A stretch of 63,289 nucleotides of DNA, counting the filler, from Choristocarpus tenellus KU-1152 (taxonomy: Eukaryota; Protista; Phaeophyceae), in assembly GCA_964200185.2 (NCBI GenBank). It is 13 parts of 13 records of this genome, joined end to end, with 100 filler letters (N's around TTAATTAATTAA, not from the genome) between each part and the next. Parts side by side here need not be neighbours in the genome. Positions count along the whole stretch, not along the records: positions 29,155 to 33,834 come from CAXNAD020013490.1; 12 more parts are not named here. One strand, 5' to 3'. Made by a program: the position numbers and the translations under genes. Under the pieces are notes generated by a model, which saw only the letters and a program-made list of their open reading frames with translations, had not been told where the DNA came from and searched no databases. Of this stretch, positions 29,155 to 34,349 are shown in pieces (the first letter of the stretch is position 1; the number at the start of each line of letters is the position of its first letter).

Positions 29155-32100
29155 TTCGAGGTTGAGGTGGGGTGGACGTGGGTGGGGTTGTCGGTTCGGC
29201 GCACAGTATGGCCGTAACGGTTTCCCAGCACTTGGGACCCATCGCCGCTGCTGGGCACCGAATGGGCGTTTGGGGATATTCCCCGAACACTCCCCCAAGA
29301 CGTGGACTCTGAGTCCGTGCCTGAGCGCCCACCCACGTTGTCCTCTACAAGCTCCTCTAGATCTGACAAAGCCTTGGAAATGGGTCGGTCCCCATCGCCT
29401 TCAGAGTCATGAACCGAGGGGGTGTGATCGTATGCCTACCCCTTGTTGGAGTCCTGGTTCCCGTACCTACTGCAAGGCTAGGCAATGCATTATCTTGTTC
29501 CTCTTCGTCACCTGATGTGGGTTGGGTCTTACGCAAGGTATAGGCGTGGATACGCCACCAGCTACGGTGTCTTCATCAGTTGAAAATTGCGGAAGGCAGA
29601 GAGTTGGTCCATGAAGAGCTTGAGACGATCTGGATCTAGGTTGTTTCCGAGGGCGGTGTATGTGATCACGACGCCTCCTGGTCGGGTCTGGAGAAGCGCG
29701 AATTCTCTCTCATGAGCGGCGTTCGTATCGGACCCGAACTTGTCAAGGTCGTGCTCGGACGTGTCGTTTTTGTCCGGCGTGATGAGGATGTTTATGACCC
29801 GTGTAATCTCTGTGATGGTGGAGGAGTGGGCAAAGAACATGGCAAAGTACGGGTCAAAACGACGGGGGAAGGTATTAGAGCGTTAGGAAGCAGGGGATAG
29901 TATGGAGGTTGGTGAGAACAAGTGAGGGAGGCAGGATACAGAGGAGGAGGCAGGGGCTGAGGAAAAGATGGATGGGTTGGAGTACTTACGGTTCGTTAAA
30001 CTTGGGGGGATTATTCGAGCCCATTACACAGGAGACGAACAGGGCTGGTAACATATGGTGAAGAGGATGTATATAGGACTAGCGTGTAACCGCGACATAA
30101 TTTGCCTTCTTTTGCCGGGTTCTCTCGATCAGTACGACACAGCGAAAGTATAAATCAGTCTCTTCGACGAGCAACTTCGCAACATATATAAAACTGGAGA
30201 ACCCTGTGACCATGTTCGTTGTGAAACTGTAAATTGTCGGTAAGATCTGTGAGAGTCTAGGTTGTGTGTTTGGTGTAGGTAACCATGTTTGGATGTTAAC
30301 GTATGGCGATGTTGTTCAATGATATAATTGCTTGTCTGTGTGTTTGTCACTGCTGTTGAGGGTTACGACTTCAGAGTATTTGACGATGTCCAGGAATTTT
30401 GTACCCTCCTCGACATCCTCCCTCAACACGAGGTCCCTCTTCACCTGTGGGTGTTAGGGGGTTGCATTAATGTGCGCTACCAGGGCGTTTATTGTGATGT
30501 GTCTTCATACAAACTGAAATACGGTGGAGAGATGAGACGGTCAACCTCAGACTGAGTCGATTACCTTGTCGCTGAGGATGTGTTTTTTCTTTGGAGGACC
30601 CTCTTCTGAAGACCCTGCTGAGGAGTCATCGGCGTTGGGGTCTATCCTGAGCTCGTCTTTCCTTTTTAGGTCCTTCATGACTTGCATGGCGACCTCCAGG
30701 ACAGCCCCCTTGATGAGGACATCCTTGGAGTGCATAAGTCTGCTGCATGCCAGTCTGACATTCGAGGGTTGAGATGCCCACTCCTCCTCCGCCTGGGCAG
30801 CAGACACCGGGTCTGGATCACCGACCCCTGGTCTGTTCTTCTTCCCCTTTCCTCTTGTTTACTTCTTTCCTTTTTCCTGGTCGGCCGGGGGTCGTTTGTT
30901 CCGGACGCCCCTTAGAGTGTGGGAGAACTGTCATGGAGAAGCACGTGGGTAGTGGAAAGGTAAGGCACATGCATGACATGGGTGTTTGCCTCGCGAGGCG
31001 CGAACTAGACGGTACACGTTGCTGCTGTTGCAGGGCCAGCAGTGGGGTAAATGCATATACATCCATATGGTTACTTTAATCGTCATGGTCAAAGATTGAC
31101 TTACCTATTCCAATGGAAACGTCTCCGTCCCGACAACATACGTCAACGCGAGCGCATCTGTAGGGAGTCTATTGGCTGCCTGCTGCTCTGAGAAGACATG
31201 CGCAGCCACTTCAACAATGTTGCGCCAGCGATGGCCTTGGGGGGTCTCCCCTCTGAGGATGGGTAGTCCGACTCCAGCGAGGAAATCAGTGCACATCCTT
31301 GTGATATATTGCTCCTTGACCTTGTTTGTGAGCTACACATATGTACATCAAGTGCGGGTTGGTGTGTCGTTATGAGACTGGTAAAGAATGATAAGCTCTG
31401 AGGATGTGGATGATTTATGGCTAACAGTGCATTGATCATCAGAGAAGGGTTGCCAGGGGATGCGCGTAGCACAGCAGAACCCTACGAGCTTAGGCTTCGT
31501 TGGAAACTGATGGCCTTTACCGTTCGACAAAGCACATCAAATTCCTTCATTATTGCCTGCCCCATGTCAATTGTGGCGTCGTGCGGGGACAGCATAATTG
31601 GGAATGTTTAACCCACCTTAAACCTGTAGGCGTGTGTGAACCCCGCCCAGTTCTTGATGGATTCGATGGCGGTATCCAGGTTAGCTACCACAGGACAGTG
31701 AACATGTGAACCGCTCTAAAGTCGGATTTGTCCTAGTAAGGTGCGCGCTTGGTGTGTGGAGAATAAGGTGACATGGTCAGGACAGAAGAACGTGGGAGCG
31801 GGAGTGGGTCCGTTGGTTGACCGCGTATTTCATAAGGTCTATAGCGATACACATGTATAAGAGGTCAATTCAAGCTCAATATGCGAAGGTAGGGGTTACT
31901 ATGGTGTTGTTGGAGTGTTAGTGGTGGTGTATTGGATGTAAAAATGTGGGGATGGCTGCACCACACTTACCGTTGACCTGTCGCAATTCTTGTGCTCTCT
32001 CCACACACTGAGAAGGATCTGCTCCAGTCCTTTTGTCTCTGGTGGAACATAATGAGGGGAAGAAAGGGATCGGGTTGGTTGGATCGCCGACGCGGAATTA

Positions 32101-33374
32101 ATATGGGTATGGGCGACGAAAAGTAGGGGATGCTTCACAATCGTTTCACAAACGTTTCACGAATCGGTTCCTGTAGAAGGAGCCGTGAGAACCTCACCTT
32201 CTCCCGCGCATATGTAGACCAAGGGTGGCGATCGCATTGAAGAACTGGACGGAGATTTGGTCGGTGAGTCTACTCATCCCGCTTTCCATGTGTGTGTCTT
32301 CCCAAGCTTCTTCGAGGAATGCCTTTATCTTGGCAGCTACCATCCTCTTAATAGCCGCCTGTAACGCGGCATCCGTACTCCAGAGGTCTACGAGCCAAAG
32401 TATAGCATATACACTTTCCCTACTCCGAACATTTTGGAGTAGGAAAATGTCATAAAAGAACCCATGGGAAGCCAAGCCCCAAATGGACAAAGAGGGAAAA
32501 ACTCGTGCTCTCTAAGATACTTTCATTCTATGTCACCTAGACAATACCGCTTGCACTTGGTGACCAATGTCGCCATACGCATGCAACGATCAGAGTCCTC
32601 ATCCGCTTCCCGGACGTAGGGGTGAGACTTGTCGCATCTGAAGTCGCGCCTATACTCCAGGATAGCGACAACCCAAGACACCATCCAATGAAATATGTCT
32701 AGGATGTTTGGTACGTGCGATCTGCTGGCTGCAACGCTCTCTCCTATGGAGATTGATTCAGTCTTTTCCCGACTGCACTGCGGATATATCTTCCACTTGA
32801 AGGTCCTGCAGTGTCCACTTTGGAGGTTTACCCCTACTTCCGAGGCCCATGGCATTGTCACATGGGCCGGGGGGTTGATACCACGTGGGATATTCTCCTC
32901 CCTGGCGACACAGTCGATTGTCCTCAACACCATTATGCGGTGTTGTCCATTGAGGTAAAACAGGAGGTTGCTATTGTCCTCTGTATCCCTATCGTCACTA
33001 TCCTGGTCCATGCCCAGGTTGCCATTGACAATGTACCTTTTTCGAATTAGTTCGCCGTGGGGCACACCAGAGGGCACGTTTCCCCTGCGCATGTCGACTT
33101 CGAAGTCCGTAATGGTTTTCCACCTCGCGCACATTGAAAACGGTTGCCCACTCAGCATCCCCGTGAGCCTATCGGCGGCGATCTGTGAATCCGGCCCCAG
33201 CTTCGCCAACATGGCCTCCACTCTACCGTTGTTCAGAAGGTTCGCATTATACTTCTGTGTCAAGAAGACAGACGTGGCGAGGTCCAGTCCATCGTACACG
33301 TCATGCTGAGGTTGGATGTGACAAGCTCGGTGGTCTTTTTGCGTTCATCCTTTTTTGGGCCTGAGGCCGGCTGT
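29155..33374 (-). pseudogene. Multi-exon ParB/DGQHR-like gene, decayed and MITE-interrupted
   Basis: 258-aa ORF 33299-32523 contains LFYLNGQHRIMVLR and TFKWKIY...; the frame continues after MITE removal into 32388-32198. Further GT-AG bounded exons near 32040-31970, 31730-31620, 31400-31105, 30920-30565, 30444-30320 and 29860-29560, with scattered stops. Confidence 0.6.
32392..32528. mobile_element. PIF/Harbinger-like MITE family C, internally deleted (137 bp)
   Basis: Minus strand closely matches 11583-11710 and keeps the other end (ATACTTTGGCTC); flanked by TAC/TAT, a degenerate 3-bp TSD. Confidence 0.8.
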
Positions 33375-34349
33375 CTGTGAACGTAGAGGGGAGAATGTCA
33401 GGACAACGGTATCAGGTAAGGAGAACGATATAGACGTGGGGTGGAGGATATTGTCAGCCCAGCACAGGAAGGGTGTGCTTGTACGAACAGTGATTGACTA
33501 TGTTATTAATGATGAGGGGATTTGTACGGAGTGCACGAGGTTCGTGTCCATGTGTGGGCTATGCAAACACGATATGAAAAGGGTGTAGTGATGCTGTGGA
33601 CATGAACACGGCTTAGCGCCTTCCTCGAAGGCCGCTATTTAGTAAAAAAAAATGGAGCACAATTTTATGCTTGACATATGGCAGACAGTGATGAGTGAGT
33701 TTCATGTGTTCTGACGAATGGTAAAGGTCATCAATATCCAAGGCGCGGCGAAATTGTTGAGGGGGGGGGGGGGGGGGGGGTTTCAAAAAGAAAAAAGGGG
33801 GGGGGAAAAAAAACTGTAAACTTAAAAAAAAAAANNNNNNNNNNNNNNNNNNNNNNNNNNNNNNNNNNNNNNNNNNNNTTAATTAATTAANNNNNNNNNN
33901 NNNNNNNNNNNNNNNNNNNNNNNNNNNNNNNNNNATTTTGAAAGGGTTAGGGGGGAATTGTTGGGGGGGGGGGGGGGGGGGGGCTGGTGGTGGATAGGTA
34001 TTTTGGCAGCAGTGTGATTGGTTGTGTTCCACTCATGTACATTTGAGTGAAGGTCTAGGTAGACCTTGATGCAATGGTTGATTGAACTCATGTGTATGGT
34101 GCCTGATCGGGGTAGTGTTGGTGTTCCTGGTTTGCTACAGGGCAAGGGAGGCACATGGTTTCTTGGTTGGTAGTTGTGTGTCCCTTGGAATTATGGTTGT
34201 TACTGTAGCACCTTGTCCAAACTAGTCTGATCCAAATCACTCAATGTATTGCTTGAAGGATTGCTTGGATACTTACACACACTCATATGAAATCATGCAT
34301 TATAGTACAGTTGAGTATGTTAGTGTGTACTTGACCTTCATTTTGGGGG

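Follow-up and report, generated by a model that had tools for sequence, protein, structure and literature searches.

The locus described here raises the question of whether a repeated element of a eukaryotic genome carries a gene of the DGQHR-type ParB clan, or a gene of another kind that resembles it in a single motif. The window, i.e., the whole stretch of DNA that was analyzed (63,289 nucleotides), contains a 4.7-kb piece at positions 29155-33834 with a GC content of ~50%. A preliminary description had placed a ParB/DGQHR-like gene on its minus strand and had seen in it a copy of an expanded, TE-like family. The peptides cited there, LFYLNGQHRIMVLR, TFKWKIYPQCSREKTES...ILDIFHW and NANLLNNGRVEAML, are all found exactly within one minus-strand ORF.

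This ORF belongs to the sole long open frame on the minus strand of the piece (32526-33344, part A in what follows), which spans 273 codons from stop to stop. Counted from a GTG at 33299, the ORF (32523-33299) encodes 258 amino acids. The first in-frame ATG is located at 33212-33210, and no ATG occurs near the start of the open frame. All other open stretches of the piece, on both strands, have a length of at most 119 codons. A frame of 273 codons was matched in only ~0.1% of 2000 shuffles of the piece (p ~0.001), and the GC content at the three codon positions of part A (GC1/2/3 = 0.53/0.41/0.63) follows the coding-like order GC3 > GC1 > GC2. Because such an open length is rare in shuffles and the codon-position GC is coding-like, the frame is very probably protein-coding now, or was so until recently.

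The distribution of the piece was followed in Logan contigs from three runs (samples), aligned at ≥80% identity. The runs stem from one study and one organism, and one of them may be the source of the window. They yielded 11,493, 8,500 and 1,685 contigs, respectively, which cover 30 of 30 bins of the piece in each run. The majority of these contigs map to one short stretch, an inserted 136-nt element that is discussed below. Over the remainder of the piece, including the ORF, several diverged contigs are present at each position, 81-89% identical. Individual contigs show 49 differences in 258 positions over 32539-32796 (record 13), 41 in 280 over 32745-33027 (record 6), 46 in 380 over 32653-33033 (record 22), and 28 differences plus 10 gaps over 33117-33380 (record 7). 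Alternative letters at ORF positions are backed by 4-22 distinct contigs. Internal deletions vary among the other copies, with joints that skip 587, 1233, 1919 or 2318 nt.

The whole piece (29155-33834) is a copy of a dispersed and diverged, transposon-like repeat family, and it ends at its edges while still within repeated DNA. The family is most likely an old, dispersed TE. The earlier proposal of an expanded, TE-like family is supported by the multiple copies with their range of identities, by the internal deletions, and by a nested insertion for which insertion-free copies exist. We infer that the family is a mobile one and that the element itself was served by the gene; as to mobility, the copy pattern is the only guide, since neither a transposition enzyme nor termini nor target duplications were detected for the large family.

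Between the copies, 475 places with transitions and 311 with transversions were counted in run X1 (ratio ~1.5). TpA is depleted in the piece, with an observed/expected value of 0.74, and on these two grounds, fungal RIP was ruled out. The substitution pattern among the copies looks like ordinary neutral decay. At position 32219, more than half of the contig depth, which does not equal copy number and was not used as such, is without one base that is present in the window copy. This extra base is a further sign of decay. Over the last few C-terminal codons, the frame of the window copy differs from that of most copies as a consequence of this indel.

The stop codon of the ORF (32525-32523) falls within an insertion of 140 nt (32387-32526), made of a short abundant element of 136 nt and a 4-nt duplication, which ends the open frame here. 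The insertion is assigned to the window copy because contigs of other copies join 32386 straight to 32527. This joint, which skips 140 nt with an ambiguity of 4 nt, was found in all three runs, and on each side of it, two insertion-free contigs (records 5 and 12) match the window at ~83% identity. TCTA is duplicated at 32387-32390 and 32527-32530, and the 4-nt ambiguity at the joint indicates a target-site duplication. In each of the three runs, no other sequence of the piece comes close to the abundance of the 136-nt element. Hundreds of contigs pass from it, at 32525-32529, into unrelated flanks that are AT-rich (agreement 0.33-0.42); left of the insertion, the family consensus carries on (agreement 0.75). 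The element holds an internal hairpin with a 9-bp stem (CTACTCCGA / TTGGAGTAG). It is not recognizably tRNA-derived, since Rfam and tRNA scans gave no match, and it probably belongs to a host-genome family of the MITE or SINE type.

When the 140 nt are subtracted, the open frame continues beyond the insertion. Part B (32197-32385, minus strand) adds 63 codons up to a stop codon at 32196-32194, in register with part A, as was checked by frame arithmetic: a part-A codon starts at 32528 and a codon of the part-B frame at 32385. Its GC1/2/3 values (0.52/0.44/0.62) have the same pattern as those of part A. By the same arithmetic, parts A and B together, minus the 140 nt, comprise ~336 open codons, or ~292 when counted from the first ATG. 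The GT..AG stretch that follows 32197 might suggest an intron, but at 27 nt it is too short, and this reading was rejected.

Other features are present in the piece. Two additional minus-strand open stretches have a coding-like composition, one of 103 codons at 30550-30858 (GC1/2/3 = 0.59/0.42/0.63; no Pfam match) and one of 106 codons at 29565-29882 (GC1/2/3 = 0.53/0.40/0.67; no match in Pfam or in word searches). These stretches could be what is left of additional genes or exons of the element that holds the main ORF. An imperfect inverted repeat of 71 nt is formed by a left arm at 31500-31570 (plus strand), identical at 53 of 71 positions to the reverse complement of a right arm at 33671-33741 (minus strand; local score 62, 75% identity). 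No target-site duplication was seen flanking it. This repeat may mark the ends of a 2.2-kb sub-element, or may consist of two copies of another small repeat; its arms bracket the ORF at a distance of 2.1 kb. The edge of the piece (33761-33834) is of low complexity, with 20 consecutive G and then homopolymers rich in A and G, and may be an assembly or sequencing artefact.

The proposed ParB relationship was built on the NGQHR motif (32937-32951, minus strand; context LLFYLNGQHRIMVL), whose coding position, read as 32951-32937, and preceding Leu-Asn codons, CTC AAT, had been given correctly. In the ORF it reads LLFYL-NGQHR, with an Asn where DGQHR has an Asp, and with a hydrophobic stretch preceding the motif. 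By chance, GQHR is expected in six frames 0.05 times per piece and 0.37 times per window of 33.9 kb; the corresponding values for [DN]GQ[HQ]R are 0.005 and 0.04. Taken alone, the motif is weak to modest evidence. The segment NANLLNNGRVEAML, which had been compared to ParB box I, is situated 95 residues N-terminal of NGQHR and upstream of the first in-frame ATG. Among 113 viral DGQHR proteins (see below), the motif is usually found at around residue 50-90. The spacing of 95 residues exceeds the whole pre-motif part of most of these viral members, and the segment was aligned by no profile, whether with custom HMMs or with hhalign against the viral DGQHR proteins. The assignment as box I is not upheld.

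Homology searches were performed with the ORF, the motif region and part B separately. None of them gave a match at E ≤ 10 in Pfam, NCBIfam, PADLOC or PHROGs, where Pfam includes ParB_N, DndB, GmrSD_N, DUF6551 and DUF3723, and NCBIfam includes a DGQHR-domain model. Nothing was found for the ORF among PDB sequences, nor in three word searches, even at E ≤ 10. When 1.84 billion representative proteins were searched exhaustively with phmmer, only two matches were returned (E ~5e-5). Both are spurious, being tandem-repeat proteins that score by summed short chance matches. Scans of viral and metagenome loci revealed no relative of the ORF, and tblastn against phages and plasmids gave matches only at E = 8. 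A tblastn match in Ralstonia was rejected, as it sits in a fatty-acid/polyketide-type cluster. Against its own piece, the ORF showed no internal paralogue by tblastn.

The same holds for the rest of the piece. Ten further open stretches had no Pfam match; open stretches of at least 85 codons showed no transposase, reverse transcriptase, integrase or recombinase domain, and no methyltransferase remnant was found in the piece. The mean pLDDT of single-sequence AlphaFold2 models was too low for use (31.8 when the whole ORF was modelled, 37.8 when residues 70-200 were). As judged from these sequence searches, the encoded protein appears to be an orphan, without a detectable relative.

A dedicated test was made, since genuine DGQHR members may match Pfam only weakly (E ~1e-4). 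Viral contigs were scanned for the coding pattern of IIDGQHRL, which resulted in 120 loci, nearly all with the motif inside a real ORF of ~240-360 aa, and 113 proteins were used. Representatives of these have sub-threshold or clear matches to ParB_N, DndB, GmrSD_N and DUF6551. Custom HMMs of the main cluster (n = 99), of an HNH cluster (n = 7) and of all proteins (n = 113) gave scores of -0.1, 1.7 and -0.4 bits for the ORF. As controls, FYLNGQHRIM was kept in place and both flanks were shuffled; the real score was reached by 85, 73 and 98 of 500 controls for the main, HNH and complete HMMs, respectively. With hhalign, the probabilities were 9.7% (main), 1.7% (HNH) and 13.2% (all); the alignments spanned just 11-20 columns at the motif, and the results were matched by 10, 38 and 4 of 100 controls. 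In these comparisons, the ORF and the viral DGQHR proteins share nothing detectable beyond the pentapeptide. The ParB/DGQHR-like identity originally given to the gene is not borne out by the library searches, the HMM scores, which equal those of motif-kept shuffles, or hhalign; the ORF does not align significantly to ParB-like profiles.

The viral scan also revealed multidomain proteins. Loci L007, L021, L035, L062 and L088 encode proteins of ~340-360 aa in which IIDGQHRL lies at residue 72-89 and the C-terminus holds an HNH endonuclease domain. The N-terminal part of this DGQHR-HNH clade has no Pfam match, and several of its contigs are labelled GVMAG (giant-virus MAGs). This looks like a DGQHR-HNH fusion present in giant-virus and phage contigs. 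Loci L038 and L044 encode proteins of 762-774 aa with a central DndB-like domain (E 1e-9); at the N-terminus, these weakly match a Card1-like endonuclease.

In a language-model search, the top cluster of the ORF was DUF3723 (0.95, 168 shared features), and eight of the 30 nearest clusters were DUF3723. When DUF3723 was excluded, the nearest named clusters were ParB_N (0.90, 117 shared features) and DUF6551 (0.89), and each of the ten best named hits belonged to the ParB clan, an agreement that is also reached by one third of shuffled proteins. Both feature counts are under the 170 that, by calibration, are typical of true family members. The language-model recognition was 2625, above the mark of 2300 typical of real proteins; for the 273-aa form it was 2292, below this mark. 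The signal may largely be a reflection of the motif itself. A coherent pattern of ParB-clan neighbours would not be expected from a pure chance motif. The proximity is regarded here as a lead, not as evidence.

DUF3723, suggested beforehand as a comparator, is favored solely by these language-model features; its profile, Pfam PF12520, had no match at E ≤ 10. It appears improbable that the ORF is a decayed member of the ParB/Srx fold (DGQHR-type), carried by eukaryotic transposons and remotely related to DUF3723. If true, DUF3723 would gain a fold and a testable role, that of a nucleotide-gated DNA-binding protein acting on its own element.

The explanation that we favor, and consider somewhat better than evenly probable, is that the piece holds the orphan gene of an unclassified transposon in a copy that is dead, the gene having been disrupted by the nested insertion of a short element. 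It starts from direct observations: an open frame that is coding-like in composition, a family of multiple diverged copies, an insertion nested in this copy, and a frame that continues in register beyond it. The piece would be an old copy, no longer active, of a dispersed repeat that is unclassified and most likely a TE of at least 4.7 kb, in a repeat-rich eukaryotic genome. This element would once have borne a protein gene of ~290-340 codons on the minus strand. The 136-nt short mobile element presumably entered at 32387-32526, with a target duplication of 4 nt, and brought the stop codon. Many substitutions, and indels such as the one at 32219, also set the window copy apart from its relatives. 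NGQHR would most likely resemble the DGQHR motif by chance; at best, it would be what remains visible of a very remote ParB-clan module.

The ORF could instead be a true, very remote DGQHR-type ParB/Srx-fold protein, related to fungal DUF3723 and serving as a transposon accessory gene. This reading would add the binding of nucleotide and of the element's DNA, as well as the loss of the Asp by a CpG transition in the dead copy; taken as a whole, it is possible but unlikely. The hydrophobic stretch before NGQHR is as in real DGQHR proteins; DUF3723 is the first language-model neighbor, and once it is excluded, ParB_N and DUF6551 come next, with all ten named hits in one clan; and only 4 of 100 controls beat the ORF in hhalign against all viral DGQHR proteins. 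The ParB-like accessory proteins of algal transposons provide a precedent (PMC12477816). A decayed remote relative could also escape the profile tests, because genuine viral DGQHR proteins themselves match Pfam weakly (E ~1e-4). However, four profile libraries are without a match at E ≤ 10, motif-kept shuffles reach the HMM scores in 85, 73 and 98 of 500 cases, and hhalign probabilities stay at 2-13%. The shared features (168 and 117) remain below 170, recognition drops to 2292 in the longer form, and a third of shuffled proteins attain the same 10/10 clan agreement. In addition, the motif is further from the N-terminus than in most real members, and the AlphaFold2 models (pLDDT < 40) are of unusable quality.

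The multi-copy pattern can also be read as a host gene family or a segmental duplication, the window copy being a pseudogene into which a short transposon happened to insert. Neither a transposase nor termini were recognized in the piece, and a diverged multi-copy pattern is also expected of old gene families. Against this, the entire 4.7 kb is repeated, including parts that look non-coding, and the internal deletions differ among copies; phmmer found no homologue in other organisms, which is unusual for such families, and the ~50% GC of the piece contrasts with the AT-rich flanks of the inserted element elsewhere in the genome. We consider this reading improbable. Least credit is given to a chance ORF in non-coding repeated DNA, which seems very improbable. 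It would agree with the lack of homologues, with an open frame that has no ATG near its start, and with a product that AlphaFold does not fold, but not with the shuffle result (p ~0.001), a language-model recognition (2625) above the real-protein mark, the codon-position GC shared by parts A and B, or the register kept across the insertion.

As the evidence stands, the piece is an ordinary dead repeat copy with an orphan gene, mainly useful for the repeat annotation of this genome. A link between ParB and DUF3723, if demonstrated, would hint at the way in which giant elements of eukaryotes deal with their DNA; it is not established by the present evidence, and a literature search returned no paper mentioning DUF3723 and ParB together. 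In a survey of the ParB-CTPase fold, sulfiredoxin is the commonest eukaryotic representative, and in eukaryotes the fold is known almost solely in this form (PMC12704722), next to a few accessory proteins of algal transposons that are reported to be ParB-like and to include a DNA methyltransferase (PMC12477816). Because of these algal cases, a transposon-borne ParB-like protein in a eukaryote would not be unprecedented.

Compared to the DGQHR-type ParB clan (DndB PF14072, GmrSD_N PF03235, ParB_N PF02195, DUF6551 PF20188 and the NCBIfam DGQHR domain), the ORF has in common the GQHR core after a hydrophobic stretch, and it is similar in overall size (~290-340 codons) to some viral DGQHR members. 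It differs by the Asn in place of Asp, by a motif farther from the N-terminus and by the absence of a profile match, and it comes from a repeat of a eukaryote, not from a bacterium or phage. DUF3723 (PF12520) is carried by fungal Starships as an auxiliary gene whose function is not known (PMC9156397; 10.1101/2025.02.28.640899). It is the top language-model neighbor of the ORF, and both sit on mobile or repeated DNA. Unlike the Starships with DUF3723, the 4.7-kb piece has no DUF3435 captain or other Starship gene and no sign of RIP. The lack of RIP, like the very large number of copies of the short element, speaks against a typical Pezizomycotina genome, and this weakens the comparison with Starships.

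The element Sola1-1_Ec32 of Ectocarpus (PMC12477816) offers a precedent for a ParB-like protein on a eukaryotic transposon, which was also the idea behind the preliminary description. Proteins of the Sola1-1_Ec32 type, however, have recognizable ParB-like and methyltransferase domains and a length of ~1100 aa, whereas no domain is recognizable in the piece. The locus also resembles decayed transposons with a nested MITE or SINE. The host element here is unassignable to a superfamily, being without an enzyme signature and having only the 71-nt imperfect inverted repeat, but it shares with such transposons its diverged copies, its internal deletions, and an ORF broken by a nested element of 136 nt that was inserted with a duplication of 4 nt.
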